DNA of 64,000 nucleotides from Octopus sinensis (lineage: Eukaryota), in NCBI RefSeq assembly GCF_006345805.1, contig NC_042997.1, positions 193,006,001 through 193,070,000 of the forward strand, given 5' to 3'. Both the position numbers and the translations under genes were made by a program. This document shows positions 11,177 to 42,270 of the stretch, piece by piece. The notes beneath the pieces were generated by a model that was not told where the DNA came from, did no database searches, and worked only from the letters and a program-made list of their open reading frames with translations. Position 1 is the stretch's first letter, and every line of letters begins with the position of its first letter.

Positions 11177-11254
<78 letters not shown>

Positions 11255-15308: not shown

Positions 15309-15398
<90 letters not shown>

Positions 15399-15447
15399 AA
15401 AATTATAAGTATATGAAAGAATGGAGTTGAACGACTAGTTAAAAATA

Positions 15448-15544
15448 TCCTTTATTCTCGACATAAGTTTCGAAGGCTGCATATTCCTAATTCCGAAGGA
15501 ATAAGGAGTACATTATGCAGATTTCTCATCAGGAAAATCAAGGA
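15448..15544 (-). ncRNA. Type I hammerhead ribozyme (left arm, mirror copy)
   Basis: Reverse complement is identical to the right-arm ribozyme across the core and stems. Confidence 0.8.
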
Positions 15545-15668
15545 ACTTATGTCGACATCAAAATGCACAAAAAATTTTTAGCTGACCGCTCTCAAGGAGC
15601 CCATCGCCATGGGCCCCTTGAGAGCGGTCAGCTAAAAGTTTTTTGTGCATTTTGATGTCGACATAAGT

Positions 15669-15765
15669 TCCTTGATTTTCCTGATGAGAAATCTGCATAA
15701 TGTACTCCTTATTCCTTCGGAATTAGGAATATGCAGCCTTCGAAACTTATGTCGAGAATAAAGGA
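15669..15765 (+). ncRNA. Type I hammerhead ribozyme (right arm)
   Basis: Stem I 15669-80 pairs with 15754-65 (11 of 12, one G-U). Core CUGAUGA at 15681-87; stem II closed by G-C with CUGCAUA/UAUGCAG; GAAA at 15742-45; minimal stem III C-UUAU-G; cleavage triplet GUC ending at 15753. Confidence 0.8.
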
Positions 15766-16027
15766 TATTTGTTAACTAGTCGTTCAACTCCATTCTTTCA
15801 TATACATATAATTTTAAAATAAACATACAAATTTCCGCACGAAGACACGTAGTCTATGCCCTAGGGACGTAGCTTCAACCGTGTTCTTTCTGATGTGAAT
15901 TTGCTACCCAGGTATCGGTTATCTTTCGAATTATCCTTAATAAGATAATTCATTCAATTACTCAAATATATATATATATATATATATTATATATTATATA
16001 TATATATATATATATAGATATATATAT

Positions 16028-16073
<46 letters not shown>

Positions 16074-17079
16074 ATTAATATGTATGTATTTATGTATGTA
16101 TACACACACACATATACACTACACGGTCGCCATTTATTGTTCATAGATGTTTTCCACTTTCCCTTTTTATTTTTTTTTTTACTCATGATCTGACTCTTTT
16201 CTAATTAGTTATTCGCAACAAACCTCACTTCTCTCCAGAAATTTATTTCTTTAATCTTCTTATCTGATTCGGTGCTATAGAGGAGAATTAGAAAATTTCG
16301 GTCTAACTGTAAATTTCAAAACAACCTGCTTAATTCACCTTTTAAATAATGTATTTGGTTTTTGTTTTGTTTTATTTCTCATTAGAAATGCAAGGTAATG
16401 ATAATAATTTCTTATATTGGTAAAGCACTAAGTTTAACAGACGAGATATAGCCAATTGGATTGATAGGGCTTTCGTTTTACCAACACCAAATGAGTGAAA
16501 GCCAGTAGACTTAATCTGTTACCCGATTTAGTTCTATATCCAGACCCTTAGATGTTTATTTAGTAAGGCCCTCTACAATCTAAACTTTCAGGCCAAGTCT
16601 TTGGTCAAAGGATAACTTCCTCTCGCCGATCTTGGATACCATGAAAAGGGTCATGGATGTTGTTCTCTCTCCTCCGACGAAGCCATTAAAAATATTAATT
16701 CTGGTTAAGATTTAACCTCAGAATGTGAGGTTGCCTCATGTATCTCATGTTATCTTTTCGTCTGAATAAAATCAATGACCATATCAAACACTAAAGGAGT
16801 GACAAAATATATCTTGGTTTTTATTCATTTTAAATTCTTATTTCACTTATTTATTTATTTATTTATTAAAAAATGATCCGATCTACCAATTTTCTTGGTA
16901 AACTGAATATCTGGCGGGGGTGAGGCACTATAGGTTTTAGGTTCATGGTGTTCTGAGCAAAAAGGATTCTGCGAATAAAGTTTTCTTAAAGTCAACAGAA
17001 ATTACGAGTAATATATTGTTTCACTTTTACCTCAGGTTCTTAAGCTGTTTTTAATAAATAAGCACATTTCTTGTACTTA

Positions 17080-17280
17080 AAACACAAGGCCTGAAATTTT
17101 GGGAGGGGGCGGGGAAAGTAGATTATATCGACCCTAGTGCTCGACTGGTACTTAATTTATCGACCTCGACAGTATAAAAGGCAAAGTCGACCTCGGCGGA
17201 ATTTGAACTCAGAACGTAATGACAGACGAAATGCTTATAAGCATTTTGTCCGCCGTGCTAACGTTTCTGCCAGATCACTG
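17080..17280 (-). mobile_element. Family A SINE
   Basis: AAAGGCAAAGTCGACCTCGGCGGAATTTGAACTCAGAACG core. Confidence 0.8.
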
Positions 17281-17550
17281 CTTTAAAATAAAACAAAATT
17301 TTAAAATAAGGTGGTTAGCTCGTATAATCGTTAGAACGTCGGAAAAATATATGGTTCTATTTGTTCCGACTCTTTACCTTTTGAGTTTAAAATCCCGTTG
17401 AAAACAACCTTTCCTTTGATTCCTCCAGAGTCGATTAAATAAAGTGGTCTCTTAAATTTTTTTTTAAGCCATCAAAATGTTCTCAAATTTTCTTCACTGA
17501 TACAGTTGTACATAACGATGACGAAAATGGCATTCATTTCTATCTAGAAA

Positions 17551-18032
17551 TCTTTATATATAAAAGTAAGGTTGTGTGTCTGTCTACTCCGATTTAGATT
17601 CCTAACTACTCCCACATTTTGCGGTGCAGTTTAACCAAAACCGGGTATCTTATAGTCGTGATTCATATCGAGCCCTTCTGGGTATTAGCGCGCGTCTACG
17701 ATGAGTCTACGATTTTAAAAATAATTTACCATCATTTTTTCCATTATAATGCATATTTTTTTAAAGGGAAGTAACTCTCTAAAAATGTCTACGATGAGTC
17801 AACGACTTTTAAAATAATTTACCATCATTTTTTCCATTTTAATGCATATTTTTTAAAGGGAAGTAACTCTCTAAAAATGTCTACGATGAGTCAACGATTT
17901 TTATAAAAATTTACCATCATATTTTTTCCATTTTTAATGCATTTTTTTGCTATTTTTTTGGCTATAACTCTCTAAAAATGCTTTATAGTTATTTCCCTTA
18001 CAAACCCGAGCAACGCCGGGCGATACTGCTAG
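17551..18032 (+). mobile_element. Non-autonomous Helitron (family H1), full length
   Basis: 5' A|TC at 17551; 3' CTAG|T at 18029-32; subterminal hairpin CCCG-AGCAACGC-CGGG; no TSD; three internal ~75-bp tandem repeats. Confidence 0.9.
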
Positions 18033-18457
18033 TTAATAATAAAGAAAATGTTACAAGCCTTTAAAGTTATATCATTATAGTCAACCGCAAGCTTCCTACA
18101 TACCGGATGTCGTAATTGTCTCTTTCCTTGATAATTGCATTCATCTTCCTCTTTCGACTTGTGATTCTATTTGTGTATTCCTAAGTGAAGGAATCGATCA
18201 CAGTCGGTTTATGTGTGAAGAAAACAGGAAAATATGTATGTACCTCGTGTAAATAATTGCTGTAATTAACATCCGTAGTGTTACTGAATCCTATTTTCTT
18301 CACACGAAGGATCTACTTCGTAACCCATTAAAGACTGGCGGTCCAATCTTGAAATGTCGAAATTGACGAAGCAATGTTTTCTAGACGGAAATATAATAAA
18401 AGTAGCATGTGCCTTCTCGAGATCATGACACACTGGAAAAAAACATTAGACAATCGC

Positions 18458-18842
18458 AGGAGTGGCTGTGTGGTAAGTAGCTTCTTTACCAACCACATGG
18501 TTCCAGGTTCAGTCCCACTGCGTGGCATCTTGGGCAAATGTCTTTTGCTATAGCCCCGGGCCGACCAATGCCTTGTGAGTGGATTTGGTAGACGGAAACT
18601 GAAAGAAGCCTGTCGTATATATGTATATATATATATATAAGTTTGTGTCTGTGTTTGTCCCCCTAGCATTGCTTGACAACCGATGCTGGTATGTTTACGT
18701 CCCCGTAACTTAGCGGTTCGGCAAAAGAGACCGATAGAATAAGTACTGGGCTTTCAAAGAATAAGTCCCGGGGTCGATCTGCTTGACTAAAGGCGGTGCT
18801 CCAGCATGGCCGCAGTCAAATGACTGAAACAAGTAAAAGAGT
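18458..18842 (+). mobile_element. Family B SINE, full length
   Basis: AGGAGTGGCTGTGTGGTAAGTAGC..GGTTCAGTCCC head; internal (TA)n; GAAACAAGTAAAAGAG tail. Confidence 0.9.
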
Positions 18843-18884
18843 AATCGATTCTAAAATTACGTAACTTTGAAGACATTCTTTTAT

Positions 18885-19081
18885 TAAGTTTCAGTCATTT
18901 GACTGCGGCGATGCTGGAGCACCGCCTTCAGTCGAGCAAATCGACCCCAGGACTTATTCTTTGTAAGCCCAGTACTTATTATATCGGTCTCTTTTGCCGA
19001 AAGGCTATGTCACGGGGACGTAAACACTCCAGCATCGGTTGTCAAGCGATGTTGGGGGGGGGGACAAACACAGACACACAA

Positions 19082-19137
<56 letters not shown>

Positions 19138-19315
19138 CACACACACACATATATATATATACGACGGACTTCTTTCAGTTTCCGTCTACCAAATCCACTC
19201 ACATGGCTTTGGTCGGCCCGAGGCTTTAGTAGAAGACACTTTCGCAAGGTGCCACGCAGTGGGACTGAATCCGGAACCATGTGGTTGGTAAGCAAGCTAC
19301 TTAGCACACAGCCAC
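18885..19315 (-). mobile_element. Family B SINE, inverted relative to the adjacent copy
   Basis: Reverse complement of family B with internal (CA)n. Confidence 0.9.
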
Positions 19316-19861
19316 ACAGAGAAAATTGATGTTATTTTCGTCATTGATAACGGACAAAGTCGACTGCTATTGAAGAGGCTGCAAGAAGCAACGAAAATTT
19401 AAGAAAAAAAAATAATAATAAGTAAATGATTGGAAATCGAATCCGGTGAGTGTGTTAATTAATAAGGCATAACAACACAATGACTCTTCCCAGACACAAC
19501 AAAATATAAAACTGTATCAATGTAAGAAAAAAAAACAAAAAAATGTAATACATTCTGGTGGTTGTTTGAAAAACTTCAACTGGCTAAAAAATTTTTTAAA
19601 GATCCAAGCACGGGGGCCGATGGTATCAAGAGCCCACTTCCTCTGAAAATTTGCCGGCGTTGTACTTTTATTTAGAAACCGTCATCGCTTTCGAAAGTGC
19701 TCTTTGTTACGTTTGATATTCCATACATTTTTTTTTTTTTTGTTACCAGACGACATTTGAAATGTCAAATATTAAACTATGTGCAAATATGAAAAAGAAA
19801 GTTAGGGAACAAATAAAACAAAATTAGGAAAGAAAGAGAAAGTATATTGTGAAATCTTATT

Positions 19862-20347
19862 CAACTCCTACACACTGTGTGTGTGTGTGTGTGCGTGTGC
19901 GTGTGTGTGTTTGTGTGTATGTATGTATTCACGTATGTATGTATGTATGTATGTATGTATGTATGTATGTATGTATGTATGTATGCATGTATGTATTTAT
20001 GTATGTATGTATTTATGTATGTATGTATGTATGTATGTATGTATGTATGTATGTATGTATGTATGTATTATGTATGTATGTATGCATGTATGTATGTATG
20101 TATGTATGTATGTATGTATGTATGCATGTATGTATGTATGGATGTATGTATGCATGCATGCGTGTGTATGTGTGTGTGTATGAATGCATGTATGTAAGTA
20201 TGTATGTATGTATGTATGTATGTATGTATGTATGTATGTATGCATGTGTGTGAATGAATGCATGTATGTATGTATGTATATGTATGTATGCATGTGTGTG
20301 AATGAATGTATGTATGTATGTATGTATGTATGTATGTATGTATGTAT
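19862..20347. repeat. (TG)n/(ATGT)n compound microsatellite
   Basis: Direct reading; source of the MYVC/HTYI pseudo-ORFs. Confidence 0.95.
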
Positions 20348-20650
20348 AGTGGAGGCACATGGCCTTGTGGTTAGAACAGCGAGTCCGCGGTCGAAGGATC
20401 GCGGGATCGAATCTCAGGCAGGGCGATGTGTGTGTTTATGAGCGAAACACCTAAGCTCCACGCGGTTCCGGCATAAGGTAATGGCAAAACTCAGCTGACT
20501 CTTTCGCCACAACTTCCACTCACTCTTTCCTCCTGCATCTTGCAGCTCACCTACGGCGGACCGACGTCCAGTCCGGGTGGGGAACCTATACGCCAATGAA
20601 ACCGGGAAACCGGCCCTTATGAGCCTGGCGTAGCTCAAGAAAGAACAAAC
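20348..20650 (+). mobile_element. Family C SINE
   Basis: GTGGAGGCACATGGCCTTGTGGTTAG..GGATCGAATCTC tRNA-like head. Confidence 0.8.
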
Positions 20651-21074
20651 ATGTAATGTATGCAAGCGTGTGTGTGTGTGTGTATGTATTTATGTATTAT
20701 ATTGTTATTTAAAATGGATCTCCGTTGGTTTCGATGTTAAGTATTTAATGTGGAAGTGACCGAGTATTCCTGACACGTAGGCCCTTAATATAACTTTCAG
20801 AGTCAGCCTCACACAATGTGACAAGGTCGATCCTTTCAATTACAGATGCAAAGAATCGACAGGTTTCAGCACAGTTTCCGTTTGTTCAATTTTATTCATG
20901 ATATTTGGTTTGAGGGGAAGTATTGTAAAAGACACTACCCCCATGACAAAATGCTGCGCGGTGCGATCGAAACCAGGACGTCGTGGATACGAAGCGGACC
21001 CCAAGATCATTCGGTTATGCTACATCTACTTTTCCTCACGTCCATCCATCCATACACAGACACACACACACACA

Positions 21075-21391
21075 CACATGCTGGTGGCACGTGAAAAAAC
21101 ATTCGAGCGAGGTCGTTGCCAGTGCCGCTGGACTGGCTCCTGTGCAGGTGGCACATAAAAAGCACCATTTGAGCGTAGCCGTTGCCGGTACCGCCTGACT
21201 GGCCCTCGTGTCGGTAGCACGTAAAAGCACCCACTATACTCTCGGGGTGGTTAGCGTTAGGAAGAGCATCCAGCTGTAGAAACTATGACTGATCAGATTG
21301 GAGTCTGGTGCAGCCATCTGGTTCGCCAGACGTCAGTCAAATCGTCCAACCCATGCCAGCATGGAAAGCGGACGTTAAACGATAATGATGA

Positions 21392-21795: not shown

Positions 21796-22215
21796 ACGCA
21801 CACGCACACACACAACCATCCCCGATGAAGTCATAGGGTGATACACAAGCATTCAGCTATTAGTGCATCTTTTAGCTGAAGCACTTGTAAGCTAATGCAC
21901 TTTATGACATAACTTCTAATTCCCTTGTCATTTTAATTTGATACGTGTGTGTATCTATATACATACATACATCCATCCATACATAGTGCACATACACGCA
22001 CACACACATACACACACACACGTACACCCACCCACACTCGCATACATCAAACCCAACCTATCTGCTATCCAAATACAACGCCCCAGTCATTATGCAGCTC
22101 ATTTTGTAGATTAACGTATTTATTTTTCGTTAATGTAATTTGTTTTCCTTTTATTTCGGCAAAAAAAAAAGAAGAGAAATAATTATAATAAAATGTAGGT
22201 AGGTATTTCAAACTC

Positions 22216-22223
22216 TATAAATA
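22216..22223 (+). promoter_or_regulatory. TATA box of the Gly-rich Ly6 gene
   Basis: TATAAATA 61 bp upstream of the ATG at 22277. Confidence 0.6.
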
Positions 22224-22276
22224 CTGAATGAATGGATTTCTAGAGTCATAAGAAGTAATCCTGAAAAACGATCAAC

Positions 22277-22325
22277 ATGTACTCCCGGAGTGCAACGTTG
22301 GTTCTTGTCTTCATCTTCTGTGCAG
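22277..22325 (+). CDS. Gly-rich Ly6/three-finger protein, exon 1 (signal peptide)
   Basis: CAAC-ATG; encodes MYSRSATLVLVFIFCA+G; phase-1 donor G|GTAAAA matches the phase of exon 2 and completes signal peptide MYSRSATLVLVFIFCAAPAVWS. Confidence 0.8.
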
Positions 22326-22694
22326 GTAAAATACACTAATATAGTTCATGTTTGCCTTTTTATTTGCATTAATGATAATTTCTTTGTTAATTGTAATTTC
22401 TTATTTTTAATTCGCTTATTTAAATATGTACAGCCACCGATATTTTGTGTCTGACGTAATGAAACGACTCCATTTTGTTGAGTGACAGGCGTTAGAACTG
22501 GCTGAAATTAGAGGCCATGTGAAATTCTTTTATTATAATTTTAAGAGGAGAATTTGATCTCACCTCTTCGTGTTGTTGAAATATTCTTTAATAATATATA
22601 CGTTGGCCAACTCGGTAGGGTGGCGGACAGAATGATTGGGAGTATTTAGTTTTACTTCTTTAGGTTCAGGTTTCGAATCCTACAAAAGTCAAAG

Positions 22695-23102
22695 GGATCT
22701 TTTCGGTTTGAACGGCAGTTTTTTTTCTAGCGGTGTCATATGAAATTGTCACCCATAATTATGACCCTAGTATCGATCTATTGCATTTCAATCTGTTTTA
22801 GGGTTACGGGGAAGAGTATCTCTTTTTCTTCAGAAATGTAAATAAACCCAATCTGTTTCTTAAACGAGGCACATATTCATACGACACAGAATGTTTTCAC
22901 CTCAATAGACGTCATTGATTGGTTGAAATTGCAGAAATTGAAGAACAACAACAACAAATATCTTACAAACTATAGAATTTTCTCAATAAAGCCAAGAAAA
23001 AAAGATGTTTTATAAACACATTCTACCAGTATACGAAGTTTAAAAGTGTTTAGTTACGTGGAAATTATTTAAAAAAAACTGCCGTTCAAACCGAAAAGAT
23101 CC
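22695..23102. mobile_element. Second copy of the GGATCTTTTCGG TIR element, opposite orientation, in intron 1 of the Ly6 gene
   Basis: Same TIRs; internal sequence is the reverse complement of 12282-12711; no TSD recognisable. Confidence 0.85.
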
Positions 23103-23289
23103 GGTTGTAATAATCGAGAACGCGCCTCTTTTTCTGGATGGGAAACTATGTACCTATATCAGAAAACTATAATATACTGTTACTAACATCATGAGGTTGT
23201 TCTTACTGTTGATTACACAACGTTTCCACTGTCTGAAGTGGAAATGAAGTCAGCGAATTTATGTATCTTGAAAATTTTACTCATTTACT

Positions 23290-23697
23290 TGCGTCAGTCA
23301 TTTGACTGCGGCCATGCTGGAGCACCGCCTTTAGTCGAGCAAATTTACCCCCAGAACTTATTCTTTGGAAGCCTAGTACTTATTCTATCGGTCTCTCTTG
23401 CCGAACCGCTAAGTTACGGGGACGTAAACACACTACCATCGGTTGTCAAGTAATGTTGGGGGGACAAACACAGATACACAAACATATACACACATATACA
23501 TATATATATATGTATATATAAATATACATATATACGACAGGATTCTTTCAGTTTCCGTCTACCAAATCCACTCACAAGGATTTGGTCGGCTCGAGGCTAT
23601 AGTAGAAGACACTTGCCCAAGGTGCCGTGCAGTGGGACTGAACCTGGAACCATGTGGTTGGTAAGCAAGCTACTTACCACACAGCCACTCCTGCGCC
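23290..23697 (-). mobile_element. Family B SINE
   Basis: Matches the reverse complement of family B. Confidence 0.9.
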
Positions 23698-24099
23698 TTG
23701 GGTATGCTCAAAATGCACACCTACTCGTTTCCTACCCGCGAGTGCCTCACCCGTGGAGGACGTGGCGATAACACCTACCGGCGGTGCGGCAGCGCATCCG
23801 AGAGGATCTCCCAGGAAAATTCTAAAGTAGAGGCCCACAATCTCTTCCACGACCCTTAGAATAGTGTCATAAATGTTTCTTCTTATACTTGATAGTATTT
23901 ACAGCCAGGCAGACAAAGACCCACTGACCAAGAAGTTAGATTCGTAAAATCAGTTGAGCTTTGTGATACATAGTTACGTCTCTTCACGTTCTGCGTTTAA
24001 ATCTCTGACAATACTAATTAGTTTCATTGTCCTCACATCTCTGACAACATCAATTAATCCAATTGCCCTCACATCCATTATGATATGCAAACAGTCGTA

Positions 24100-24330
24100 G
24101 ATATCTTGATGTTTATCACCTTCGGTTACTTTCTCTTCTCAATGATCGTCAGTACAGTTTCAACAGTCGTATCTACTGGAAACTTACACTTCTACATCAC
24201 ACTGCGCTCTCATATATCCTCATGGCTAATTATTCGGCTACTTGAGTTATATCTATTATCCCTGGTATACCTCAGGGTTCTGTTATGTATTTCACGCTCT
24301 TCTTTCTCTACATGAATGACCTCACTCTTA
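24100..24330 (+). pseudogene. Degraded LINE reverse-transcriptase fragment (CR1/Jockey-like)
   Basis: Translates as ..PGIPQGSVM.. and ..LFFLYMNDL, matching the GVPQGS..LYINDL RT motif. Confidence 0.55.
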
Positions 24331-24548
24331 CTTCTAAGCTGACTCTTATACAAAGACTATTACACGTTAAGGCACCTTAATGGCTAAACTTTACAATAAT
24401 GTCAACCAATGGCAACCTCAAAGATCAATCTTTTCCTTTTATTCTATTTCAGTTGATGCAATAATTACCCGTTAAGTACTGGGTATAATTTGATTGTACC
24501 GTTTCTCAAACTTTGAGGCCTTGTGCCTCATCAATCATCAGCCAAGTG

Positions 24549-25030
24549 CCCTTGCTACGACCAGGGGTCAGCTAGCCAAGATTCTCCATTTCCCTCTCTG
24601 CTGTGCTGCATGCATACACCCATCCAGGCTCTTGTTTCCAGTCCATTCTTTGACGTCGGCGTCTACAAATATCTTTGACGACTTTATGTCTTATGTTCTC
24701 TTCTCTTGAATACTTCCTGTCAGGATGGTCTTGGGAAATAACTCGTGGCACAATCTACGTCCAAATATGATGGGTTTATGGACTTGATTTTCGACACTAG
24801 GCATCTTCGAACTTCCATTTTTTCTAGTACTGCAGCGTTTGTTACTTTGTTTTCCAACTTATTCTGTCCAAACTGCGAGACATCTACGTCTCAAAGACAT
24901 CCATTGCTCTGTGCATTGTCCAAGCTCGACACCAAAAATGTAGGTCGTTTATATAATGTGGACTCTACCAAAATGAACAAGATAGCGTTTATGCTTTTTC
25001 TTCCACCGATGTTATCGCAATCCTGACCTT
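24549..25030 (-). pseudogene. Degraded RTE-clade LINE 3' fragment
   Basis: Minus-strand remnants resemble the RTE C-terminus (KTILTG, VKEWTG, ..RGKWRI). Confidence 0.55.
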
Positions 25031-25719
25031 TCCTGTCGTCTGCCTCAAATACTCAGCTTCTTTTATTTCACTGCATCGTGCTGTTTTAATGCTGTTGCTA
25101 TTACCAAAATTTTCCTCGTCTTCCCCTACGTCAATACTTCTCGGCCTTTTGTAACTCAGCCCTCCTTCTTTAACTAGTGTAGGGTGTGCAGTGTGTGCAG
25201 ACCGCACAAATGGGTAATTCTGTACATGCATTTACTGTAGTCGAAGGTATGTTACGTTTAAGGAAGGGTGATCGATTTGGCTTCTTCACGGGACGGCCCT
25301 AAAATCCCAGCCTTTCACCGAAACGATGCTTTACCCCGTCTAAGATTTTTTTAAAGTAGAAATTTATTTTAATCAAACTGCCCAGTAGTTTATTATTCAT
25401 ATTTTTATATACTATTCCATGTAAATCCATAACTGACGGGAGCCTGAGAGCCGTGGGTTAGGGATCCGGATGAGCATTTACCTATTTAACGCGGTAGTTT
25501 GACAAAATCATTAGAACATCTGACAAAAAATGCTTCATAGTATTAGTTACAAATCTTACAAATCCTACCGATGTTGTTCTTATAACTGTTTCCTACCCGC
25601 TGAAATCAATACCAGTGATTATTCGTTGACAGATACATCTGGTAACAGAAAGATCAAACAAAGCAATAGTCTATTTACATGTCCTAGTATATAGGATAAA
25701 AAGATAATAGTAATAATGG

Positions 25720-26000
25720 TCTAGTGGTTAGGGCAACGGATAACCGGTCGAAAGATCGCGGTTTCGATTCCCGGACCGGGCGTTGTGTGTGTGTTTATTG
25801 AGCAAAAACACCTAAAAGCTCCACGATGCTCCGGAAGGGGGTGGTAGTGACCCCTGTTGTACTCTTTCGCCACAACTTTCTCTCACTCTCTCTTCCTATT
25901 TCTTGAGTAACGCTGCGATGGACTGGCGTCCCCTCCAGCTGGGGGGAACACATACGCCACAGAAACCGGGAAACCGGGCCCATGAGCCTAGCTAGGCTTG
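25720..26000 (+). mobile_element. Family C SINE
   Basis: ATGGTCTAGTGGTTAGGGCA..GGTTTCGATTCCCGGACCGGGCG head. Confidence 0.8.
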
Positions 26001-26224
26001 ATAAGAGCGACGTTTATCGTTTTTAATACAAATCAAGTAATGTTGATGAAGTATATTCTCCGAAACGTTAGGCTACTTCTTCCTCGCGGCTCTATTTGAA
26101 TTATTTGTATTACTTTTTTGTCCGCTAGTTCACTGTATTACCGTACAATATCATAGAGACTAGTGATTGTCCACCTTTTGTACTTCAGCGCTATTTTCTT
26201 TCAAATCATTCTCCAAAAGAACGT

Positions 26225-26630
26225 TACTCTCTCTCTTTACTCTTTTACTTGTTTCAGTCATTTGACTGTGGCCATGCTGGAGCACCGCCTTTAGTCGAGC
26301 AAATCGACCCCAGGACTTATTCTTTGGAAGCCTAGTACTTATTCAATCGGTCTCTTTTACCGAACCGTTAAGTAACGGGGACGTAAACACACCAGCATCG
26401 GTTGTCAAGCGATGTTGGGGGGACAAATACAGACACACAAAGATTTACACACTCACATATATATATACATATATACGACGGGCTTCTTTCAGTTTCCGTC
26501 TATCAAATCCACTCACAAGGCTTTCGTCGGCCCGAAGCTATAGTAAAAGACACTTGCCCAAGGTGCCATGCAGTGGGACTGAACCCGGAACCATGTGGCT
26601 GGTAAGCAAGCTACTTACCATACACAGCCA
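26225..26630 (-). mobile_element. Family B SINE ending ~70 bp upstream of Ly6 exon 2
   Basis: Matches the reverse complement of family B. Confidence 0.9.
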
Positions 26631-26700
26631 CCTGACCAGGTTAAGACAAAACCTCACTGATATAAATTAACATAAAATTTAAATTTTTTTAAAATTTCAG

Positions 26701-26973
26701 CGCCAGCGGTATGGAGTGGTTATGGAAGTTCAGGTCATAAAGGTGGCGGCGGTGGTGGCGGCAGCGGTGGCGGCGGCGGTGGCGGTGGCGGCGGTGGTAG
26801 TTGGTCAGGTGGTGGAGGAGGAAACAATCTCAAGTGTTACGACTGCCACAGTGGTTCCGCAAGTTATACTTACAAAGATTGTCCGGTCAATGGAAATTTG
26901 AACGGCCAGAACTTAGCAACTATCAACTGCGATGGTTTGTGTTTCTCAAGAACGAGCAAATGGGAGAAAGGTG
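26701..26973 (+). CDS. Gly-rich Ly6/three-finger protein, exon 2
   Basis: Acceptor TTTCAG|, donor |GTAAGT, 273 nt, phase 1-1. Encodes (A)PAVWSGYGSSGHKGGGG..SWSGGGGGNNLKCYDCHSGSASYTYKDCPVNGNLNGQNLATINCDGLCFSRTSKWEKG. Confidence 0.92.
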
Positions 26974-27044
26974 GTAAGTACATTTGAATTGAATATTTTG
27001 GCATTATCTCCCCTGGGAAAAAATGTGCATATACACACATTCAC

Positions 27045-27370
27045 ATGATCTCTCACTCTCTCTCTCTTTCTTTCTCTCTCTCTCTCTCTCTCCCTTTCTC
27101 TCTCTCCCTTTTCTCTCTCTCCCTTTTTCTCTCTCTCCTCTCCTCTCTCTCCCTCCCTACCTCCCTCACCCCGTCTCTCCCTTTCTCTCTCTCCTCCTCT
27201 CCCCTCTCTCGCCCTTTCTTTCTCTCCTATCTCTCTCTCTCCCCTTTCTCCCTCTCTTACTCACGTGCACAAACGCGCACATTCACACATGCACACACAT
27301 TCTCTCTCATTCGATGTCACTCTTCCCCCTCTCTCTCACACACATTTTTTCTCACTCTCTGTCTCTCTCT
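27045..27370. repeat. CT-rich low-complexity tract
   Basis: Direct reading. Confidence 0.9.
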
Positions 27371-27494
27371 TTAAAATTCAGTCTTAACTTTATCTAGAAG
27401 AGATTGTCTCCTCTACGATAGCTGACCACCAGGAGCATACCACACGTAAATATCACTGTACTTCTCCCGTAAAATTAAATACTGTGTGCCTCTT

Positions 27495-27718
27495 TATTTA
27501 CTCTTTTACTTGTTTCAGTCATTTGACTGTGGCCATGCTAGGGCACCGCCCTTAGTCGAGCAAATCGACCCCAGGACTTATTCTTTGTAAGCCCAGTACT
27601 TATTCTATCGGTCGATTTTGCCGAACCGCTAAGTTACGGGGGGCGTAAACACATCGGCATCGGTTGTCAAGCGATGTTGGGAGGACAAACACAGACACAA
27701 ATACATACATACATACAT

Positions 27719-27811
<93 letters not shown>

Positions 27812-27980
27812 TATATATATGTACGACGGGCTTCTTTCAGTTTCCGTCTACCAAATCCACTCACAAGGCTTTGGTCGACCCAAGTCTATAGTAGAAGACA
27901 CTTGTCCAAGGTGCACGCAGTGGGACTGAACCCAGAACAATGCAGTTCGTAAGCAAGCTACTTACCACACAGCCACTCCT
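27495..27980 (-). mobile_element. Family B SINE
   Basis: Matches the reverse complement of family B; expanded internal (CATA)/(TA) tract. Confidence 0.9.
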
Positions 27981-29390
27981 ATTTATTCATTCATTTTTTC
28001 CTTCATCCTCAGTTATCAGAACTTCAATTTTTCTCTGTTTTTTTCTTGTATGGAAGTGCTATAGTGATGGTGATGATGACGATGATGATAATGCATTCTA
28101 CAATGGATTTTCACATTGCAACTTAAAGATTCATACACAGTAGCCATTCTATTACCTTCAAGGGATAGTTGTGGTTGCTTAGCTCCAAGTTACCCTTTAT
28201 TTGGCGGACCTATGATCAAAAATTTTCTTCTACAACTACCCTATTTTCTTTAGGCCATAGCATCTAACATGTGTATTTTTTCTTTTTTTTTCTTTAAGAC
28301 AGTAGATTGTAATTTGAGGGAGATATGGTTTCCATTTCTAGTATGTCTAGTGCCCAGATAGAAGCCTCCTTATTACTTGTCTGACTAAGCGGCTTTTATG
28401 AAGATGGTATTATTCATAGTTTTTTTCAAAAACGTTTAATTCATACACCTCGAGTTATATCATGCTGACGATTACTAAAAAGAATGAAATAGTATTAGAT
28501 CTGATTACTAATGACTAGAAATTTTTAGAACTTTGTAATAAGTAAACAAGAAAAGTAAATATGCATCTTTTTCGTTGTTATTCCTTAATTTCAAATTCAA
28601 AATCTTAATCTTGTCAAATGTTATGAAGAAATGATTATCTCCCTTATTCTAACTGTCCGCTCGAGAACTCCGCGTATTTAATCCAATACGTTTCGTTATT
28701 GAAACTCAAATGATTATTATAGAGACAATTGTTGTTGTTCAATCCAAGGTCAGCGCTGATCGAGCAAACCCACGATCAAAGTCATTATAGCAATGACAAT
28801 TCTATGCGTTTTCTTTTTAAGTCGTAGTATATTTAGGATCATTCTTTTAACGTATCCTTTTGTTTTAAGTGGATACAGTGTATTTTGAAAGAAATTTGGC
28901 TACTATTTCTCGAATGACGAGCGACCGCATAAAGACTCGCTCATTAGCTCATTAAAAAAATTGACTGAGCTGACCTAAGATCTATAGGCATTTCATTCGT
29001 GACCATCCCGTCTTTTTAAGGTTACTTATGCCTAAATTAACCAATGTATCCTTTCAATTTTTAGAGACAACAGGGTGTGATTTGAAGGAGACATAACTGC
29101 TTATTATTGGCAGAGTGACTATTTAGAGGCTCTTCGTGATCCTGTCCGTGTTACGATAATAGCGTTTTTCATTGATCAGTTTTCAATCGAAATCCATAGA
29201 TTTTTACTTCATTGCTTTTTTTTCGTTTTTGTTCTTTCCTTCTTTGTCTAAGTCAGTTATAATCCCCTTCATATCTGGATGCTATATGGGAATGCAATAA
29301 GAATACTTCTGATTTAGTTATCACTGGTGGCGATTTTATAGAGTTGGAAGATGGATGCAAGAACAAGTAGTTTGCGTGAATATATAAATA

Positions 29391-29955
29391 TTGGGTTGTC
29401 TGGAAAGGTCGTGCCGATTTATAAAGGAAAGAAAAAGGTCAATAATACTTGCCATTACATTTTTAATCAACCAAATATGAACCATTTTGTTGCACAATGT
29501 GTCTCCATCTTTCCTTTAACTTGAAAATACCCTCTTCCCAGAATTGAGGTGGTTTCATAGCAAACAATTCATCAAGGTATCTTTTTACGTCATCCAAGGA
29601 ATTGAAATTTTTACCATTAAGACTATTCTGCAGAGACCTGAATAAGTGGAAATCTGAAGGAGTAATATCTGGTGAATATGGATGGTGGGGTAACACATCC
29701 CAACCGTGCTGCAGCAATTTTTGTCTGGTTCCCAAAGCATCAAGTGCCGAAAATGAACTTTCTTATCTTCCATTTTAAAGGGTTACAGAATTAACACAGG
29801 TTATGGGAACATAAATCTTCTTCCACGAAAAGATAGCTTAAACTGTGCTCTAAATGGAGGTGTAGTCAAATCCTATTTTATGGACTCGACCATGTTCTAA
29901 AATAAGTCGAAATGTAAGCTGCTATAAATCGGCACGAACTTTCCGGACAACCCAA
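29391..29955 (-). mobile_element. Internally deleted mariner element
   Basis: TIRs TTGGGTTGTCTGGAAAGGTCGTGCCGATTTATA / TATAAATCGGCACGAACTTTCCGGACAACCCAA; TA TSDs. Transposase N-terminus MEDKKVHFRHLML joined out of frame to the C-terminus carrying HPYSPDITPSDFHLF. Confidence 0.93.
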
Positions 29956-30676
29956 TACAAATATGGTTATTTATCGTTAAACAAAACAATGTGACGTCGT
30001 TACGACCAATGACTAGATAGAAATGTTTGCAGCAGATAAATAGTTCAACTGTTTGTGAGGATGTTGCTGTCTAGAGAATCACAGTAGTTGTGAGAGTCAT
30101 TTGTATAAGGTTAAGACGTGTGCCACCACTGGCAGCTAGCGGACAGCGAATTCTATTTATAGATAATGTTTCTGTCAAGGGAAAAAGGTGCCGAAAACAA
30201 AATTTTAATGACATCCCCCTTCTAGTCGAGATCCAAATGATCGGTTCTTTGCTGGCGTCATCAATAATTGAGCGAATCACGATCATTGCGATACAGTGAT
30301 TTTGTACCAGAGATTTGATCGGACAGATGTTTGCTGATGTCATCAAGCTCTAACAAAGTCCTGACCGTTCTAATACAGCGATCTGGATTCAATTTGTTGG
30401 TAGTGAATTAGTGTTTAGGACACTACTACAGGAATATTAAATCGCTCCCCAGAATTTTACTGCTACTTTTTTTTAGCGTTCCGTTCAGGATAAATGAGAG
30501 ACAAAGATGACATCAGTCGGTTTTGAACTCAGAACATAAAAAACCGTAAATAAACACCGCAGGTATTTTTTCCCAAGTTCTTACCATTCTGACTATCTAC
30601 CGACTGATATTTTAAAAATCTTTTCTCTCCACAATTTCTTTTATTTTATCATCCAGTTCATTCATTTTCTTTTCAG

Positions 30677-31371
30677 TTATCTACAGGGGATGTTCATCAG
30701 CTTTCCCCAACTTACCAAGTAACCTGAAACCTGGATGTATCGATTTTAAAGGTGAATCGTGGTGCATGTGTTCGAACGATCTTTGCAACACTGATGACAT
30801 GGGCAGCTACATACATGGTGGCGGCGGCGGAGGTGGAAGTGGCGGAGGCTCATGGGGCGGTGGTGGCGGTAAAGGTGGTAATGGTGGAGGAGGAAAAGGT
30901 GGAAATAATGGAGGTGGATCGTGGGGTGGTGGTGGTGATGGATCGTGGGGAGGTGGTGGATCGTGGGGTGGTGGTAGTGGTGGATCATGGGGTGGTAACG
31001 GAGGTGGTGGCAGTGGGTCAAAGGGTAGTCACGGAGGCGGTGGAAGTGGATCGTGGGGCGGAAACGGAGGTGGAGGAAGTGGGTCAAAGGGTGGTCATGG
31101 AGGCGGTGGATCGTGGGGTGGTGGCAGTGGGTCAAAGGGTAGTCACGGGGGCGGTGGAAGTGGATCTTGGGGTGGTAACGGAGGTGGTGATAGCGGATCA
31201 TGGGGTGGCGGAGGAAAAGGTGGAAATGGAGGAGGTGGCTCGTGGGGAGGTAGCGGTTCATGGGGTGGTGGAGGCAGCGGAAGCGGTGGAAGTAGTGGAG
31301 GCGGTGGAAGTAGTGGAGGCGGCGGAAGTAGTGGAGGCGGCGGAAGCATTGGTGGAAGTTACGGACGTTAA
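30677..31371 (+). CDS. Gly-rich Ly6/three-finger protein, exon 3
   Basis: Acceptor TTTTCTTTTCAG|; in frame with ORF 30766..31371. Encodes (V)IYRGCSSAFPNLPSNLKPGCIDFKGESWCMCSNDLCN, then Gly/Ser/Trp repeats to ..GGSYGR stop. Confidence 0.93.
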
Positions 31372-31483
31372 CGAAGATGACGTAAGCCATAACACGCCTT
31401 CAATCTCAAAGACTTCAGGAACTGTCTTCAGCTTTCTTCAATATTTTCTGCCTGAGAAACTCTTCTCTGGTCTTTCATCTGTT

Positions 31484-31489
31484 AATAAA
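31484..31489 (+). promoter_or_regulatory. Polyadenylation signal
   Basis: AATAAA ~113 nt after the stop codon at 31371. Confidence 0.6.
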
Positions 31490-31576
31490 ATTTCAAACTG
31501 ACTCCTGGTATCCTGTTTATCTTTACTCTTCTTATTCTTTTTGTTATATATCAATACACACACACACACACACACT

Positions 31577-31788
31577 CGCGGGGGTTGCTGAAAAGTTCCT
31601 GGGTTTGGGTAAAAGAAAGTACAGGAGGATCAGTCAATTATGAATTTATTCAACATGTTCCCCGTCAGATTCACACACTTGTTGCAGCAGTCTTTCTAAA
31701 TCCTGTGAAAGAACTCGGAAGGTTGGGCCACCGACTAGGCCTTTTGCGATATTCTTAAAGCCAGGAACTTTTCAATATTCCCTCGTAT
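31577..31788. mobile_element. Mariner-derived MITE
   Basis: Imperfect TIRs GGGGTTGCTGAAAAGTTCCTGGGTTT / AAAGCCAGGAACTTTTCAATATTCCCTCGTA. Confidence 0.7.
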
Positions 31789-32003: not shown

Positions 32004-34441
32004 ACATTGTGTACAGTGCTCAGGTGCACTACAACTCATCGAAAGTGTATATATAATCAGTTGTAGTTTCGACGGATTTCGGAAAGCATGAGGGCCTTAA
32101 AGGATGCAGTGTCATGGCAGTCAACAACTGACGCAGGCAGTTTATTCCATGCTTCAGCAACTCTGAGCGTGAAAAAATGTTTCCGAAAGTCATGGGAGCT
32201 GTGTTGTTTTCTGACTTTGTAGGCATGTCCACGTGTGTTAGACACATGGAGATCAAAAAGGTGTTCAGTGTTGTTATTGGTGAGGGGGTTGACAACTTTG
32301 TGGGTGTTTACCAAGTCCGTCGCCAGACGCCGGAGCTTCAGTGAATCATGCCCAGGGAAACAAGGCGCTCAGAATATGGTAGGTGTCTGATGGAGGGTAT
32401 GCGTTTGGTTGCACGTCTCTGAACAGATTCCAGGAGGTCAATGTTCTGAGCAAGATAGGGGTTCCAAACTGATGATGCGAATTCCAATGTGGTCGTACCA
32501 TAGCTGTATACAGTTTTAAATAGATGGCTGGAGAGCGGCTAACAAAAGTCTTGCTGAGTGATGCCAAGACACCCTCGGCCTTCTTGACAATTTTAGAGAT
32601 ATGCTTTGTCCAACGCAAATCACTGCTGACAGTGATGCCTAGGTCACGCTCGCAAAAGGATTTCCTGATATCAGTGTTGTGGAGGGAGTATGTGGACGCA
32701 GGGTTTTTTCTCCCAAAATGCATGGTGGTACACTTGTCCACAGCCAGTTTCAGTTGCCAGTCTGTGATCCATTGCTGCATTGTGTCCAGGTCTGATTGCA
32801 GGAAAGAGCTGTAGACAACAGGATCTGTCCTCTTGATTTCAAGGTACAGCTTGATGTCGTCTGCATATTTTAATACTGTGGCATTCTTTAAATTTGCATC
32901 TATGTCATTAATGTATGCCACAAACAAGAGGGGACCAAGGACAGATCCCTGTGGTACACCCGATGACATCTCATATGGTGTAGAATGCTGTCCTAGAACT
33001 GTGACTACCTCCTTTCGGTTGAGAATGAAGGATTTCAACCAGTTAAAAAGGTCATCCCTCACACCCATTGCAGAGAGTTTCACCATAAGCCTTTTGTGTG
33101 GCACAGAGTTGAAAGCCTTAGCAAAGTCAAGGTAGACAACATCCACCCATGAGCCACTGTCAGTGATCTGAGTAATGTCCTCAAGAACTCGACAAGCTGA
33201 TCACTGCAGCTGGAGTTAGGGACAAATCCATATTGTGAGGGTCGGATGAGACTGTGTGAGCTCCAGAAGTTCCAAAGTGTTTCTCTGACACACGATTCCA
33301 TCAGTTTTGCAATGCAGCTAGTGAGACTGACTGGGCGATAATTGACAGGTGATGTGCGGTCGCCCTTCTTGAACAGAGGAATGACACTGGCAGTTTTCCA
33401 CTGTTCCGGAGTAGCACCATTGTTGAGACAGTACTGGAAGAAAGTAGAGAGTTGGTGTAAAGGAAGTACCTGCCACGTTTGAGAAGCAGGTATGTAACTC
33501 CATCAAGACCAGGGGAGGCATAGTTGCGCTTATTTTGAAGGTGACGTCGCAGCATTGCAGGTGTAAATTCCATAGTTGTTATGGAATTTGCTGTTAGAGA
33601 TGGTGAAGATGGTACATTTTGACTTTCAACAGTGAATATGTTTGCATAGCACTCGGCAATGAGTTCTGCGCATTCCTTGGGGTCGTCAGTGATCTGGTTT
33701 GTGTGAGGGTTGCGAAGAGGGCCCACTGGAGAGTGAGGTCTCTGCTTCGAATGCACATATTTCCAGAAAACCTTGCTGTCAGGATTGGCTGCTATGCACT
33801 GTTCAAATTCAAGCACTGCTTTTTTTGTCACTTGCTTGAGATGGTTGGAAGATTTATTCCGCTTCTTCCTGTTGGTGTCTGATTTATGCAACTTGTATTC
33901 CTGTTCAGCAGTTCGACGTTCCTTCCTGGCAAGTCGGACCGCTGAAGTTTCCCAAATTGCACTTTTGGGGCGGTTCTTCTTTTTCTGTTTACATGGCACT
34001 GATGCTGCACATGCTGCCCATATTGAGTCCAGGATACCCTGGAGTATAGTATTCACATCTCCAGAGTTGTAGAATTCACGCCAGTTTGGGTGCTGTAGTT
34101 CAGTGTGGTACAGGTTCCAATCTGCTCTCTTCCAATCGAAGGAAGCAGTTTGGAGATGGTTCAGGTTTTTGTTGCCCGCAAGAGCCAGATTGGCGATGAT
34201 CATAGCATGATCAGAGTCACCTAGAGGTTCCTCCGTAGTGCAATTGATAACCGCTTCAGGAGTCGTGGTGAAGAGCAGGTCCAAGGTGTTGTCGCCTCTT
34301 GGAGAGGTGACTACTTGTGACCAGTTTGAGTCCAGTACAAGCTCAACAAAATCGTTTGCACTCTGTGGCCAATGGAAGGTTTCCCAATTGATTTCAGGAT
34401 GATTGAAATCGCCTGCAATGAAAACATAAGTGGCTGTTTTC
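31981..34441 (-). mobile_element. CR1-clade LINE, 5'-truncated ORF2 (EN end + RT) with frameshifts and (ATT)n tail
   Basis: Motifs IAGDFN, TLDLLFT, SDH, VYLDFAKAF, GVPQGSVLGPLLF, YADD, TRGH..K. Split across ORFs 33301..34284, 33080..33301, 32346..33146 and 32057..32314. Confidence 0.95.
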
Positions 34442-35802
34442 CTAGCTGGTGTACCCGGTAATTCCCGGGGGTAAAGATGTTCTATTTAAATGCCTCATTT
34501 AAACGCCTTATTACTCTGATATACAAATGCAATTTCGTTACAACTGCCACAAAAAGTGTATTTTCCGTCACGAAAAAGTACAAGAAACTGTCAGCTGGAG
34601 GAGGGAGAGATTGTCGGAGGTTGGCGAGAGAGAATTTCGGAGGTTGACAAGAGAGACTGTCGGAGGTTGGCGAGAGAGATTGTTGGAGATTGTCGAGAGA
34701 GCTTTTCAGAGGTTGTCAGAGATTGTTGGAGATTGTCGAGAGAGGTTGGCGGGAGAGGTTGTCGGAGATTGGTGAGAGAAGTTGTCGGAGGTTGGCAAGA
34801 GAGGTTGTCGGAGTGAGAGGAATCTTTGTTCCAATATTTCAGTCTTGCAGCGCTTCGTGATACACAACGTTTTTGGTTTTGCCGTTGGGTATATAGATGA
34901 ATAAATTTTCCGGATTTCAAACGCTAGAGCATCCGACATAGAATCTGTCCGTGAGAAAAAGCAGGATTGGGACACACCTATTAAATACGTTCTAGAATCA
35001 AAATTTATCTACTGTCATCGAAAATGTTTAACTGGAAAAATGCAGAATTATCGGAGTTATTGGCATTCAAAGTGTAATTAAATTTAATTGAAAACCCTGC
35101 ATGCATTGCCAGTATTTAGTTATTTGGAGATGTTGAAAAAATGTCTATTAATGCAATGTCTAAATTAATTATAGCAATATGTATATAACTGTTTAGATAT
35201 TGAAAAAGACGAAGAATAATTGTTTGATTTAGTAAATATCAAATATAATGAATCGGAGACTTACTTAAGATAGCTATTATCGCATTAGAGCAGCTTATGA
35301 AGTAGAAGTACCCACTCGTACTCTTACTCGTCGTGACATTTTAAATGTTAACTTTATCAAAGTTAATTTATTAAAGCTAATATATAAATATAGCATATAT
35401 AAACGAAAAAAAAATATATCTATGTATATAAATGTATGAATGAAGTCTTTAATATTTAAGATTCAAAACTTTGAGTAGTGAAATGCAGAATTAGGTCCGC
35501 TGATCGTGAGAATCAAATATTGATCGCTTCGCTAAAAACTGACAAGTGCAGGTGCTTTGGTTTATTTCCCTTGGGTGTTTAACTAAAATATATTAGTTAT
35601 ATATAGTAGATATAAGGATCCCTTCCAGGGGCCCTATTATCAATTTTTTTCAACAATCTAAGTATCTCACGGTGTTTCCAGACATGAGTTCTCCTCAAGT
35701 GTCAAGTTTCATCAAAATCGATAAAACTATGTAGGAGGAATTAGCTAACAGCTCCACAAAACAAACATACCCACAGACAGAATTTCCTACATATATAGTA
35801 GA
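34442..35802 (-). mobile_element. Non-autonomous Helitron (family H2) with internal ~21-bp minisatellite
   Basis: Minus 5' end A|TCTACTATATATG at 35802; 3' end CCCG-GGAATTAC-CGGG hairpin then CTAG at 34442-45; GAGAGATTGTCGGAGGTTGGC-like repeats at ~34605-34812. Confidence 0.75.
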
Positions 35803-36330: not shown

Positions 36331-36799
36331 TATTAGTGGGCGTGTGCTGTTGGTGCTGTATCTGCTGATATTAATGTTGTTGGAGCTGAGACTGCTGGTG
36401 TTGGCGTCACTGGAAGTGGTGATAGGCCATCAGTAATGGTATCGCCACTGCCGGTTATGGTGAAGGCGCTGTTATTATTGTGATCTTCGTCATTGGTGGG
36501 AGAGTTGCCATTGCTGCTAGAGGTGTCATTAGCTGTGGTTCCGCTGATGTCTCTGTTAAGTCCACTGTCGCTGCAGCTGCTGTTGCCATTATTGTCGTTA
36601 TTTTTGACGGTTGCACTGGACCTATTGCTGCTGCTACAAGGGTTGTCAGGTCTGCTGCTGTGGACGTTAGGGGAGCATATTTGTAAAGCAAATATATTAA
36701 CCACAGAGCCATGCCTCTTGCTTATTAGTGGTGCCTAATGTACTGAGATAAGTTTTAAATTAGCTCATTTTCATTACGATAAATTTAATAGCTTCAAAT

Positions 36800-36980
36800 T
36801 TTGGCACAAGGCTAGCAATTTCTGGGGAGGGGATAAGTCAATTACATCGACCCCAGTGCTCAACAGGTACTTATTTTATCAACTCCGAAAGGATGAAAGG
36901 CAAAGTCGACCTAGGTGGAATTTGAACTCAGAATGTAAAGACAGACAAATTTCTGTGCTAATGATACTGCCAGCTTGCCA
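36800..36980 (-). mobile_element. Family A SINE
   Basis: GGATGAAAGGCAAAGTCGACCTAGGTGGAATTTGAACTCAGAATG. Confidence 0.8.
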
Positions 36981-42099: not shown

Positions 42100-42270
42100 C
42101 TAAAATAGCAAATAAAACATAGAAATAAGTCAGACAATGGACAATAAAAGCATTTCAAATGTGAACAAATACTGAGAATAACAAAAAATTATGGAGATGT
42201 ACTTGCATAGCAAGTGACCTGATCTGAGATCATGTGCTGGAATGAAAACAATTGCAGCGTGGTAGGTGTA

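Follow-up and report, generated by a model that had tools for sequence, protein, structure and literature searches.

An apparently unannotated octopod gene encodes a predicted secreted three-finger protein with glycine-rich, tryptophan-bearing arms

The described proteins closest to the gene considered here form the Quiver family of LU (uPAR/Ly-6-like, three-finger) domains (PF17064, clan uPAR_Ly6_toxin), which includes the Drosophila proteins Quiver/Sleepless, Boudin, Coiled, and Retroactive. A signal peptide, a single ten-cysteine LU domain with a CxxC opening and a CxCxxxxCN end, and a three-finger beta fold characterize these proteins, and the same combination, with the signal peptide as a prediction, recurs in the product of a gene that we describe from chromosome 1 of Octopus sinensis. 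A survey published in 2026 of LU proteins across invertebrates counted ~83 LU genes per genome in molluscs, of unknown function, and reported nonstandard architectures in which LU domains are combined with G protein–coupled receptor, C1q, fibrinogen, immunoglobulin, or MAM domains; glycine-rich arms are unmentioned there (PMC13719153). The octopus gene lies within a 64,000-nt stretch of the forward strand (C1:193,006,001-193,070,000, C1 being chromosome 1; hereafter the window), and its ten-cysteine domain is set between a short and a long Gly-rich arm. We conclude with high confidence that incirrate octopods have, at this locus, a true protein-coding gene that is maintained by selection and whose product has an LU fold.

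We read the window sequence over positions 22000-22500, 26600-27100, and 30550-31700 and joined three plus-strand exons by script (22277-22325, 26701-26973, and 30677-31371). The spliced open reading frame spans 1017 nt and encodes 338 aa followed by TAA. This reproduces the three-exon model of a preliminary description of the same DNA, and exons 2 and 3 are matched in the octopod Argonauta as well. Both introns are GT-AG introns in phase 1, with donors CAG/GTAAAA and GTG/GTAAGT and with TTTCAG at both acceptors. The coding part of exon 1 (22277-22325), MYSRSATLVLVFIFCA and one further base that opens the following codon, encodes most of a predicted signal peptide, and exon 2 begins with the end of that peptide, APAVWS (26701-26717), where cleavage before GYG is predicted by the -3/-1 rule only. 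Exon 2 continues through an N-terminal Gly arm of 35 aa and 74% Gly (GYGSSGHKGGGGGGGSGG...SWSGGGGG; 26718-26822), which has a counterpart in Argonauta, and through the first half of the LU domain, with Cys 1 to 5 (NNLKCYDC...SKWEKG; 26823-26973), up to a donor whose position Argonauta retains. The second half of the domain, with Cys 6 to 10 and the invariant Asn (VIYRGC...WCMCSNDLCNTDDMGSYIH; 30677-30816), opens exon 3. It passes, in the same exon and frame, into a C-terminal Gly/Ser/Trp arm of 184 aa that ends in GGSYGR (30817-31368) and is closed by the stop codon TAA (31369-31371). The phase-1 acceptor before V-I-Y-R-G-C is found also in Argonauta, in a paralogue on chromosome 2, and in one presumably molluscan contig. 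Two flanking signals named in the preliminary description can be read in the sequence, a putative TATA box (TATAAATA; 22216-22223) 61 nt 5′ of the ATG and a putative AATAAA polyadenylation signal (31484-31489) 113 nt 3′ of the stop codon. The native protein has a predicted mass of 27.6 kDa, and the tryptic peptides expected from it include GVIYR, DCPVNGNLNGQNLATINCDGLCFSR, and GSHGGGGSGSWGGNGGGGSGSK.

Exon 2 has no in-frame ATG 5′ of the domain, and an upstream coding exon is therefore required. Exon 1 is the best nonrepeat candidate of 529 phase-1 ATG...GT candidates in the 20 kb 5′ of exon 2: its hydropathy (2.97) is the highest among nonrepeat candidates, its donor match (7/9) is the best, and it is the exon that follows the putative TATA box. 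The signal peptide predicted with this exon, on which it relies (MYSRSATLVLVFIFCAAPAVWS), has n-, h-, and c-regions, with V at -3 and S at -1. In Argonauta, blastn and a signal-exon scan of the 5 or 10 kb 5′ of exon 2 gave no match to exon 1. A retroelement of the long terminal repeat type lies directly 5′ of Argonauta exon 2, as a pair of pol open reading frames (reverse transcriptase/RNase H-like, then integrase-like; L008 2175-4291, plus strand, equivalent to L009 ~7175-9291). It probably sits inside intron 1, which would account for exon 1 not being reached.

The domain of the octopus protein comprises 97 aa and, as first described, exactly ten Cys; the 11th Cys of the protein falls in the signal peptide. 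Its framework, LKCYDC...C...C...C...C...C...WCMCSNDLCN, combines an N-terminal CxxC with a C-terminal CxC(x4)CN. The Cys domain is complete only once exons 2 and 3 are spliced, and the excised domain then matches Pfam QVR (PF17064, Quiver family uPAR/Ly-6-like) with 30.1 bits against a cut-off of 27.3 (E 1e-6). The only Pfam match besides QVR is a weaker one to DUF7622. In an alignment of 40 homologous segments, 33 of which match QVR individually, C5, C8, C20, C36, C40, C56, C82, C87, and N88 are invariant, and C71 and C80 occur in at least 90% of the sequences. AlphaFold2, run on the domain with this alignment, returned a model of six strands with a predicted local distance difference test score (pLDDT) of 94.8 and a predicted template modeling score of 0.85. 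When this model was compared with the PDB using Foldseek, the first 44 matches were all three-finger or LU proteins (best E 5.3e-3, probability 0.98-1.0), among them short-chain snake toxins, C4.4A, uPAR, the ectodomains of transforming growth factor-beta, activin, and bone morphogenetic protein receptors, Lynx1, GPIHBP1, and TEX101. A profile search of PDB sequences with the domain gave no match, so that the fold comparison alone ties it to solved structures. Framework, profile, and fold together make membership of the LU/QVR superfamily very probable, which bears out the initial Ly6/Quiver three-finger assignment.

The gene is apparently unannotated, as no Octopus model was found in the collection searched. 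The exact 338-aa product is absent from a collection of 15 billion proteins and from a gene-position index, and no Octopus protein with this domain occurs in that collection in the ranges of 186-591 aa and 53-170 aa; the collection does hold models of a paralogue from O. sinensis, Octopus vulgaris, and Octopus bimaculoides. Word-indexed full-length searches with regions 1-155 and 58-154 gave no match, the first being swamped by Gly-rich words, and a partial model from Argonauta was the sole match of a domain-only search of the collection. At 25.7 bits, the full-length protein falls below the Pfam QVR cut-off of 27.3. Genome scans covered the O. sinensis assembly (2.72 Gb, 13,516 contigs); a six-frame scan with QVR found only two unrelated loci and missed the locus in the window because each exon holds just half of the domain. 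The gene is thus hidden, as had been proposed, both from the protein models searched and from domain scans of the genome. The case illustrates how pipelines can miss or shorten low-complexity genes when an intron interrupts the one domain that is recognizable.

An exhaustive HMMER search of 1.84 billion representative sequences retrieved 64 proteins. The best match was GAB1599296.1 of Argonauta hians, a partial model of 144 aa with 71% identity across the domain that stops short after the first GGGSW. We read the underlying locus in three frames and found that Argonauta exon 2 encodes APSVWCGYGNSGHHGGGSGGG...NTVSCYDC...SKWEKG and that exon 3 encodes VIYRGC...CNTDDMGNYIH, followed by an uninterrupted stretch of ~219 residues of GGSWGG/GGSKGG repeats that ends in GGGGGSYGR and a stop codon. 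The exon 2 acceptor (ggcag/CACCA against ttcag/CGCCA), the exon 2 donor, and the exon 3 acceptor are at homologous nucleotides and in the same phase. The introns share no similarity detectable by blastn between Octopus and Argonauta, and intron 2 differs in length (~0.7 kb in Argonauta versus 3.7 kb in Octopus). By Nei–Gojobori counts, the proportion of nonsynonymous differences in the domain (pN) is 0.145 and that of synonymous differences (pS) is 0.845, which is saturated. The corresponding ratios of nonsynonymous to synonymous substitution rates (dN/dS) are ~0.15 for the N-terminal arm and ~0.22 for the C-terminal arm, with the usual caveat of repeat alignment.

The C-terminal arm consists of 64% Gly, 19% Ser, and 6% Trp, with 11 Trp and a single Tyr, and has an isoelectric point (pI) of ~10.1. 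It contains 11 GSWGG motifs and three SKG motifs and ends ...GGSIGGSYGR; together, the two arms make up ~70% of the length of the mature protein. The preliminary description had correctly counted 11 Ser-Trp motifs, all of which are GSWGG, and had recognized both arms, at ~40 and ~190 aa; the arms stand, with exact lengths of 35 and 184 aa. Every Trp of the arm lies within GSWGG, in Octopus (11 of 11) as in Argonauta (14 of 14), and the 25 copies vary at synonymous positions only, with Gly encoded by GGA, GGC, or GGT and Ser by TCG, TCA, TCT, or TCC. Because every Trp is held in the motif and the copies differ only synonymously, the arm pattern is best read as that of a translated, constrained sequence and not of a neutral microsatellite. 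Tandem Repeats Finder detected imperfect periods of 66 nt and 114 nt in the C-terminal arm. No second gene with a GSWGG arm was found in a search of the O. sinensis assembly, where the C-terminal arm is unique.

The product is best read as secreted and not glycosylphosphatidylinositol (GPI)-anchored, a conclusion drawn from its predicted signal peptide, from the hydropathy of its C-terminus, and from the putative polyadenylation signal 113 nt past the stop codon. Many LU proteins, such as those of the classical Ly6 type (Quiver/Sleepless, Lynx1, CD59), carry a hydrophobic GPI signal at the C-terminus. The highest 15-aa Kyte–Doolittle mean in the C-terminal arm is -0.18, and the mean of the last 25 aa is -0.52, compared with 1.32 for the GPI-type tail of a paralogue. 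The window gene thus has no hydrophobic C-terminus, as noted at the outset, and no GPI-attachment signal; a GPI-anchored, Quiver-like neuromodulator was rejected on that ground. The paralogue is the sole one recognizable in the genome (LOC118762295, chromosome 2, C2:90264521-90264673; XP_036356687.1) and is conserved in O. vulgaris (CAI9718112.1) and O. bimaculoides (XP_014779742.1); in one UniRef entry, it is called an activin-receptor-domain protein. It has the same type of LU domain, with a phase-1 intron at the same place before V-I-F/Y-R-G-C. It differs in lacking Gly arms, in having only ~32-38% identity to the window gene, and in carrying a splice donor right after ...CNRASM (ATGG/gtaagt) that leads to a ~110-aa stalk and the hydrophobic GPI-type tail. 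At the corresponding point, the window gene reads ATGGGCAGC; no donor is present, and the frame runs on into the Gly arm.

The HMMER matches that we looked up are mainly uncharacterized molluscan proteins (Argonauta, Octopus, Patella, Haliotis, Gigantopelta, Liolophura, Batillaria, and Bradybaena), together with the annelid Owenia. A maximum-likelihood tree of 74 domain segments over 98 columns, in which deep nodes are weak, divides the family in two. Proteins of one clade have their domains in tandem, with xELDAHL and then a hydrophobic tail after them. In a second clade (41 rows, support 81/81), the domain stands at the extreme C-terminus after Thr/Ser/Pro-rich parts, and weak CPG4-like (chondroitin proteoglycan 4) regions occur N-terminal of it. 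Octopus and Argonauta pair within this second clade with support 100/99. The closest proteins outside octopods, at 40-49% identity, are uncharacterized molluscan proteins with a C-terminal QVR-like domain, from Haliotis (XP_067661634.1, XP_046543381.1), Gigantopelta (XP_041370842.1, XP_041368499.1), and Liolophura (XP_064616775.1). These share the clade, an ending of the type ...CNTxDM..., the lack of a GPI tail, and the attachment of variable low-complexity regions. Their low-complexity parts are usually N-terminal and Thr/Ser/Pro-rich or acidic, not Gly/Ser/Trp (the acidic tail of Liolophura is exceptional in being C-terminal), and none has GSWGG repeats.

Most members of the second clade have 0-13 residues after the domain, compared with 184 in the window gene and 219 in Argonauta. 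The ends of the domains are themselves similar: the window gene reads CNTDDMGSYIH, and relatives read, among others, CNTDDMSGYV followed by a stop, CNTQDM, or CNTMQM. The first of these endings comes from a contig that is presumably molluscan (Logan SRR26493808), which terminates at ...CNTDDMSGYV where the window gene continues with ...CNTDDMGSYIHGGGG.... Because relatives stop within 0-13 residues of the domain and the paralogue has a donor at that point, the C-terminal arm looks like an octopod addition, made when repeats expanded over an ancestral stop codon. On this reconstruction, a stop just past the domain would have been displaced by an expansion of GGN-type repeats. As an example of a protein region newly born in this manner, the gene is a clean candidate.

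What such a protein does is a more tentative matter. The domain relatives are mucin-like or matrix-like, and the Octopus–Argonauta pair lies inside their clade; we therefore favor, as a possibility somewhat short of an even chance, an extracellular matrix, surface-coat, or secretion protein in which an LU docking module is coupled to multivalent Trp arms. The protein would be released to the extracellular space, where the rigid LU module would offer a single site at which a protein or glycan partner is bound specifically. The arms, which are weakly cationic, may behave as flexible sticker-and-spacer chains. The regularly spaced Trp of GSWGG and Lys of SKG would then make many weak aromatic, cation–pi, or sugar-stacking contacts, for example with chitin, and such contacts could allow the protein to cross-link, coat, or condense. 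Taken as a whole, the explanation that joins the gene, its secretion, and this mechanism of LU module and arms is the best available, and we place it just under the halfway mark. The narrower proposal that the GSWGG arms are a hitherto unrecognized tryptophan-based sticker-and-spacer material domain, made by stop displacement in octopods and capable of self-assembly or coacervation, is doubtful. The roles first suggested for the protein (a biomaterial, self-assembly, or chitin binding, with a place in the sucker, beak, egg coat, or skin) are plausible but unsupported. If the narrower proposal is true, the protein would represent a new class of cephalopod biomaterial (cuticle, adhesive, mucus, or egg coat) with its own docking module, distinct from suckerins, reflectins, and beak proteins.

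Several other explanations account for parts of these data. The protein could be a secreted immune effector or antimicrobial, by analogy with crustins and acanthoscurrins, in which a cationic Gly/Trp tail acts on microbial surfaces, the disulfide domain serves recognition or stability, and the C-terminal Tyr-Gly-Arg is trimmed and amidated. Gly followed by a basic residue at the C-terminus is a classical amidation signal, and the ...GSYGR end is kept in both species, as are a basic C-terminal arm (pI 10.1 in Octopus and 10.75 in Argonauta) and its 11-14 Trp. We nevertheless regard this explanation as unlikely: the net charge is just ~+5 to +7 across 184-219 arm residues, amphipathic segments and dibasic processing sites are lacking, Pfam and PDB-sequence searches showed no homology to antimicrobial families, and the closest relatives look like mucin or matrix proteins and not like peptides. 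The same relatives, with their Thr/Ser/Pro-rich stretches and weak CPG4 matches ahead of the same C-terminal domain, would suit a core protein of the proteoglycan or mucin type. In such a protein, glycosaminoglycans or O-glycans attached at Ser-Gly and Gly-Ser-Gly sites of the arms would give the material its properties, with the LU domain serving as a terminal cap for binding. These sites are abundant: the mature Octopus protein has 18 SG and 11 GSG, and the C-terminal arm of Argonauta has 32 SG and 18 GSG. The acidic residues usual near Ser-Gly sites of glycosaminoglycan attachment are almost missing, however (two Asp/Glu in the Octopus arm and none in Argonauta), the CPG4 matches are subthreshold, and the strict conservation of Trp in GSWGG is left unexplained, all of which makes this possibility quite improbable.

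A diffusible modulator of receptors or ion channels, comparable to SLURP or to secreted Quiver and Lynx proteins, would need only the LU domain, the arms being tolerated spacers or solubility tags. Receptor-modulating secreted LU proteins are established (PMC13719153), the domain matches Pfam QVR, and its fold resembles those of Lynx1 and the three-finger toxins. Yet the arms constitute ~70% of the mature protein, and neutral spacers would not be expected to keep their frame in two lineages whose synonymous sites are saturated, with dN/dS of 0.15-0.22 and an invariant GSWGG; the nearest relatives, moreover, are long mucin-like proteins and not small neuromodulators. This alternative is rather unlikely. 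Extremely improbable is a nonfunctional locus, in which a decaying pair of LU exons lies beside a GGN microsatellite that is open by chance and the link to exon 1 is spurious. GGN repeats do hold other frames open here, including a second plus-strand frame and one minus-strand frame, no Octopus protein model or transcript was found, and the region is packed with long interspersed nuclear element (LINE) and short interspersed nuclear element (SINE)-like repeats. Against this stand the strong purifying selection on the domain, the retention of frame, motif, and stop in Argonauta, the ten intact Cys, and the passage from domain to arm within one exon. Exon 2 must also be preceded by another coding exon, for which a well-formed candidate with a putative TATA box is present. 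A chance open reading frame in a microsatellite was accordingly rejected on the basis of the cross-species constraint.

Some observations weigh against the favored reading of a secreted LU protein with functional arms, or limit how far it can be taken. Exon 1 is probable, backed by sequence features of this DNA alone. The Foldseek E-values are modest, with template modeling scores of 0.44 (query-normalized) and up to 0.65 (target-normalized), because the loops of the domain are longer than those of solved LU domains. A full-length single-sequence AlphaFold2 run was uninformative, with a pLDDT of 33.9 even across the LU domain, and arm disorder is therefore inferred from composition alone. The CPG4 matches of the relatives fall below the Pfam cut-off. 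The arms have a low charge density. The uniformity of the repeats could derive partly from concerted evolution instead of functional selection. Finally, microsynteny is not conserved between Argonauta and O. sinensis, and gene order lends no support.

The surroundings of the gene in both species were also noted. In Argonauta (BAAFZT010000006.1, L009), a DEPDC5 gene lies ~3.4 kb 3′ of the orthologue in convergent orientation (15198-21167, minus strand); O. sinensis DEPDC5 is at C1:154998143-155011993, on the same chromosome as the window gene and 38 Mb off. Within the window, a non-long terminal repeat retrotransposon fragment with an RVT_1 (E 6e-26) and Exo_endo_phos_2 open reading frame pair occupies 32346-34485 (minus strand), ~1 kb 3′ of the polyadenylation signal, and a second fragment of a retrotransposon endonuclease occupies 10015-10710 (minus strand). 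A dispersed SINE-like repeat, with the translation ...STPGLILCKPSTYSIGLFC...GCQAMLGGQTQT... followed by a microsatellite, is present on the plus strand at 18845-19331, 23454-23771, 26266-26670, 41253-41648, and 45130-45435 and on the minus strand at 11035-11420, 18328-18753, and 60212-60676. Two of the copies are within intron 1, one ending ~30 nt 5′ of the exon 2 acceptor. A second dispersed family (...GIKSITSTPVRNWYLFNRPRKDERQSRP...) is found at 2319-3136, 36739-37086, and 48769-49092 (plus strand) and at 61547-61894 (minus strand). A third (...HASMGWTV...CTRLQSDLAVFLQLDALPNANHS...) is found at 47259-47576 and 49231-49671 (minus strand) and at 57157-57534 and 57978-58379 (plus strand). A stretch that may be related, ...LDALPSANP..., is present at the Argonauta locus (L008 7756-8187).

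Other open frames in the window are of several kinds. A minisatellite-like array at 52973-53932 (minus strand), with a unit of approximately LSYLYSPSLLPLLTVSLTSTH, is open in three frames and has no Pfam match. The frame at 41886-42188 (minus strand) is nonrepetitive and exon-like (...KERQAQWVKDEEERVASLPDPTVPPGHKVLPDSERVETLELLQKSKALS...); a Pfam scan gave no match to it at E<=0.01, and it could belong to a neighboring gene as one of its exons. Compound microsatellites, (TATG/CATA)n and (CA)n, at 4035-5353 and 19806-20435 keep four to six frames open over more than 1 kb and yield many spurious open reading frames of the YVCMYVCM or HTYIHTYI type.

Compared with known systems, the window protein departs from each in a definable way. 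A full-text literature search retrieved nothing relevant on the GSWGG motif, on Gly-rich octopus proteins, or on LU proteins in shell or egg-case matrices. Gly-rich structural proteins are secreted and have low-complexity repeats with interspersed aromatic residues; among them, suckerins alternate Gly/Tyr-rich modules with Ala/Thr/His-rich beta-sheet modules and have no Cys domain, and KRMPs join a basic region that contains Cys to a Gly-rich one. The likeness of the window protein to suckerins, His-rich beak proteins, shematrins and KRMPs, abductin, and the glycine loops of keratin and loricrin is compositional only. It has Trp in a fixed GSWGG context in place of Tyr, Phe, or His, possesses an LU domain, lacks Ala/Thr/His beta-sheet modules, and showed no sequence homology to any of these proteins. 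The initial label "silk/keratin-like" thus holds for composition and fails for homology, and a suckerin or keratin homologue was rejected on that ground. In contrast to suckerins, the arm contains one Tyr and no Ala-rich modules and is joined to an LU domain. Type II crustins and Gly-rich antimicrobial peptides, such as acanthoscurrins and ctenidins, combine a signal peptide, a cationic Gly-rich region, and a disulfide-rich module. The disulfide module of the window protein is LU, not the WAP (four-disulfide core) domain that follows the Gly-rich and Cys-rich regions of type II crustins (a Pfam scan of the protein, which returned QVR and DUF7622 only, gave no WAP match), and its Gly-rich part is far longer and lies mostly at the C-terminal side. 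From the Quiver family, it differs in lacking the GPI-signal tail, in the longer loops of its ~97-aa domain relative to solved LU domains, and in Gly arms of 35 aa and 184 aa that are found in no described member. An LU domain between constrained Gly arms is clearly an unusual architecture that departs from the LU background: the protein appears to be nonanchored, its arms appear to be under purifying selection, and its motif does not vary among the 25 copies from two octopod lineages. It offers a defined sequence for the study of extracellular assembly, adhesion, or defense in octopods.

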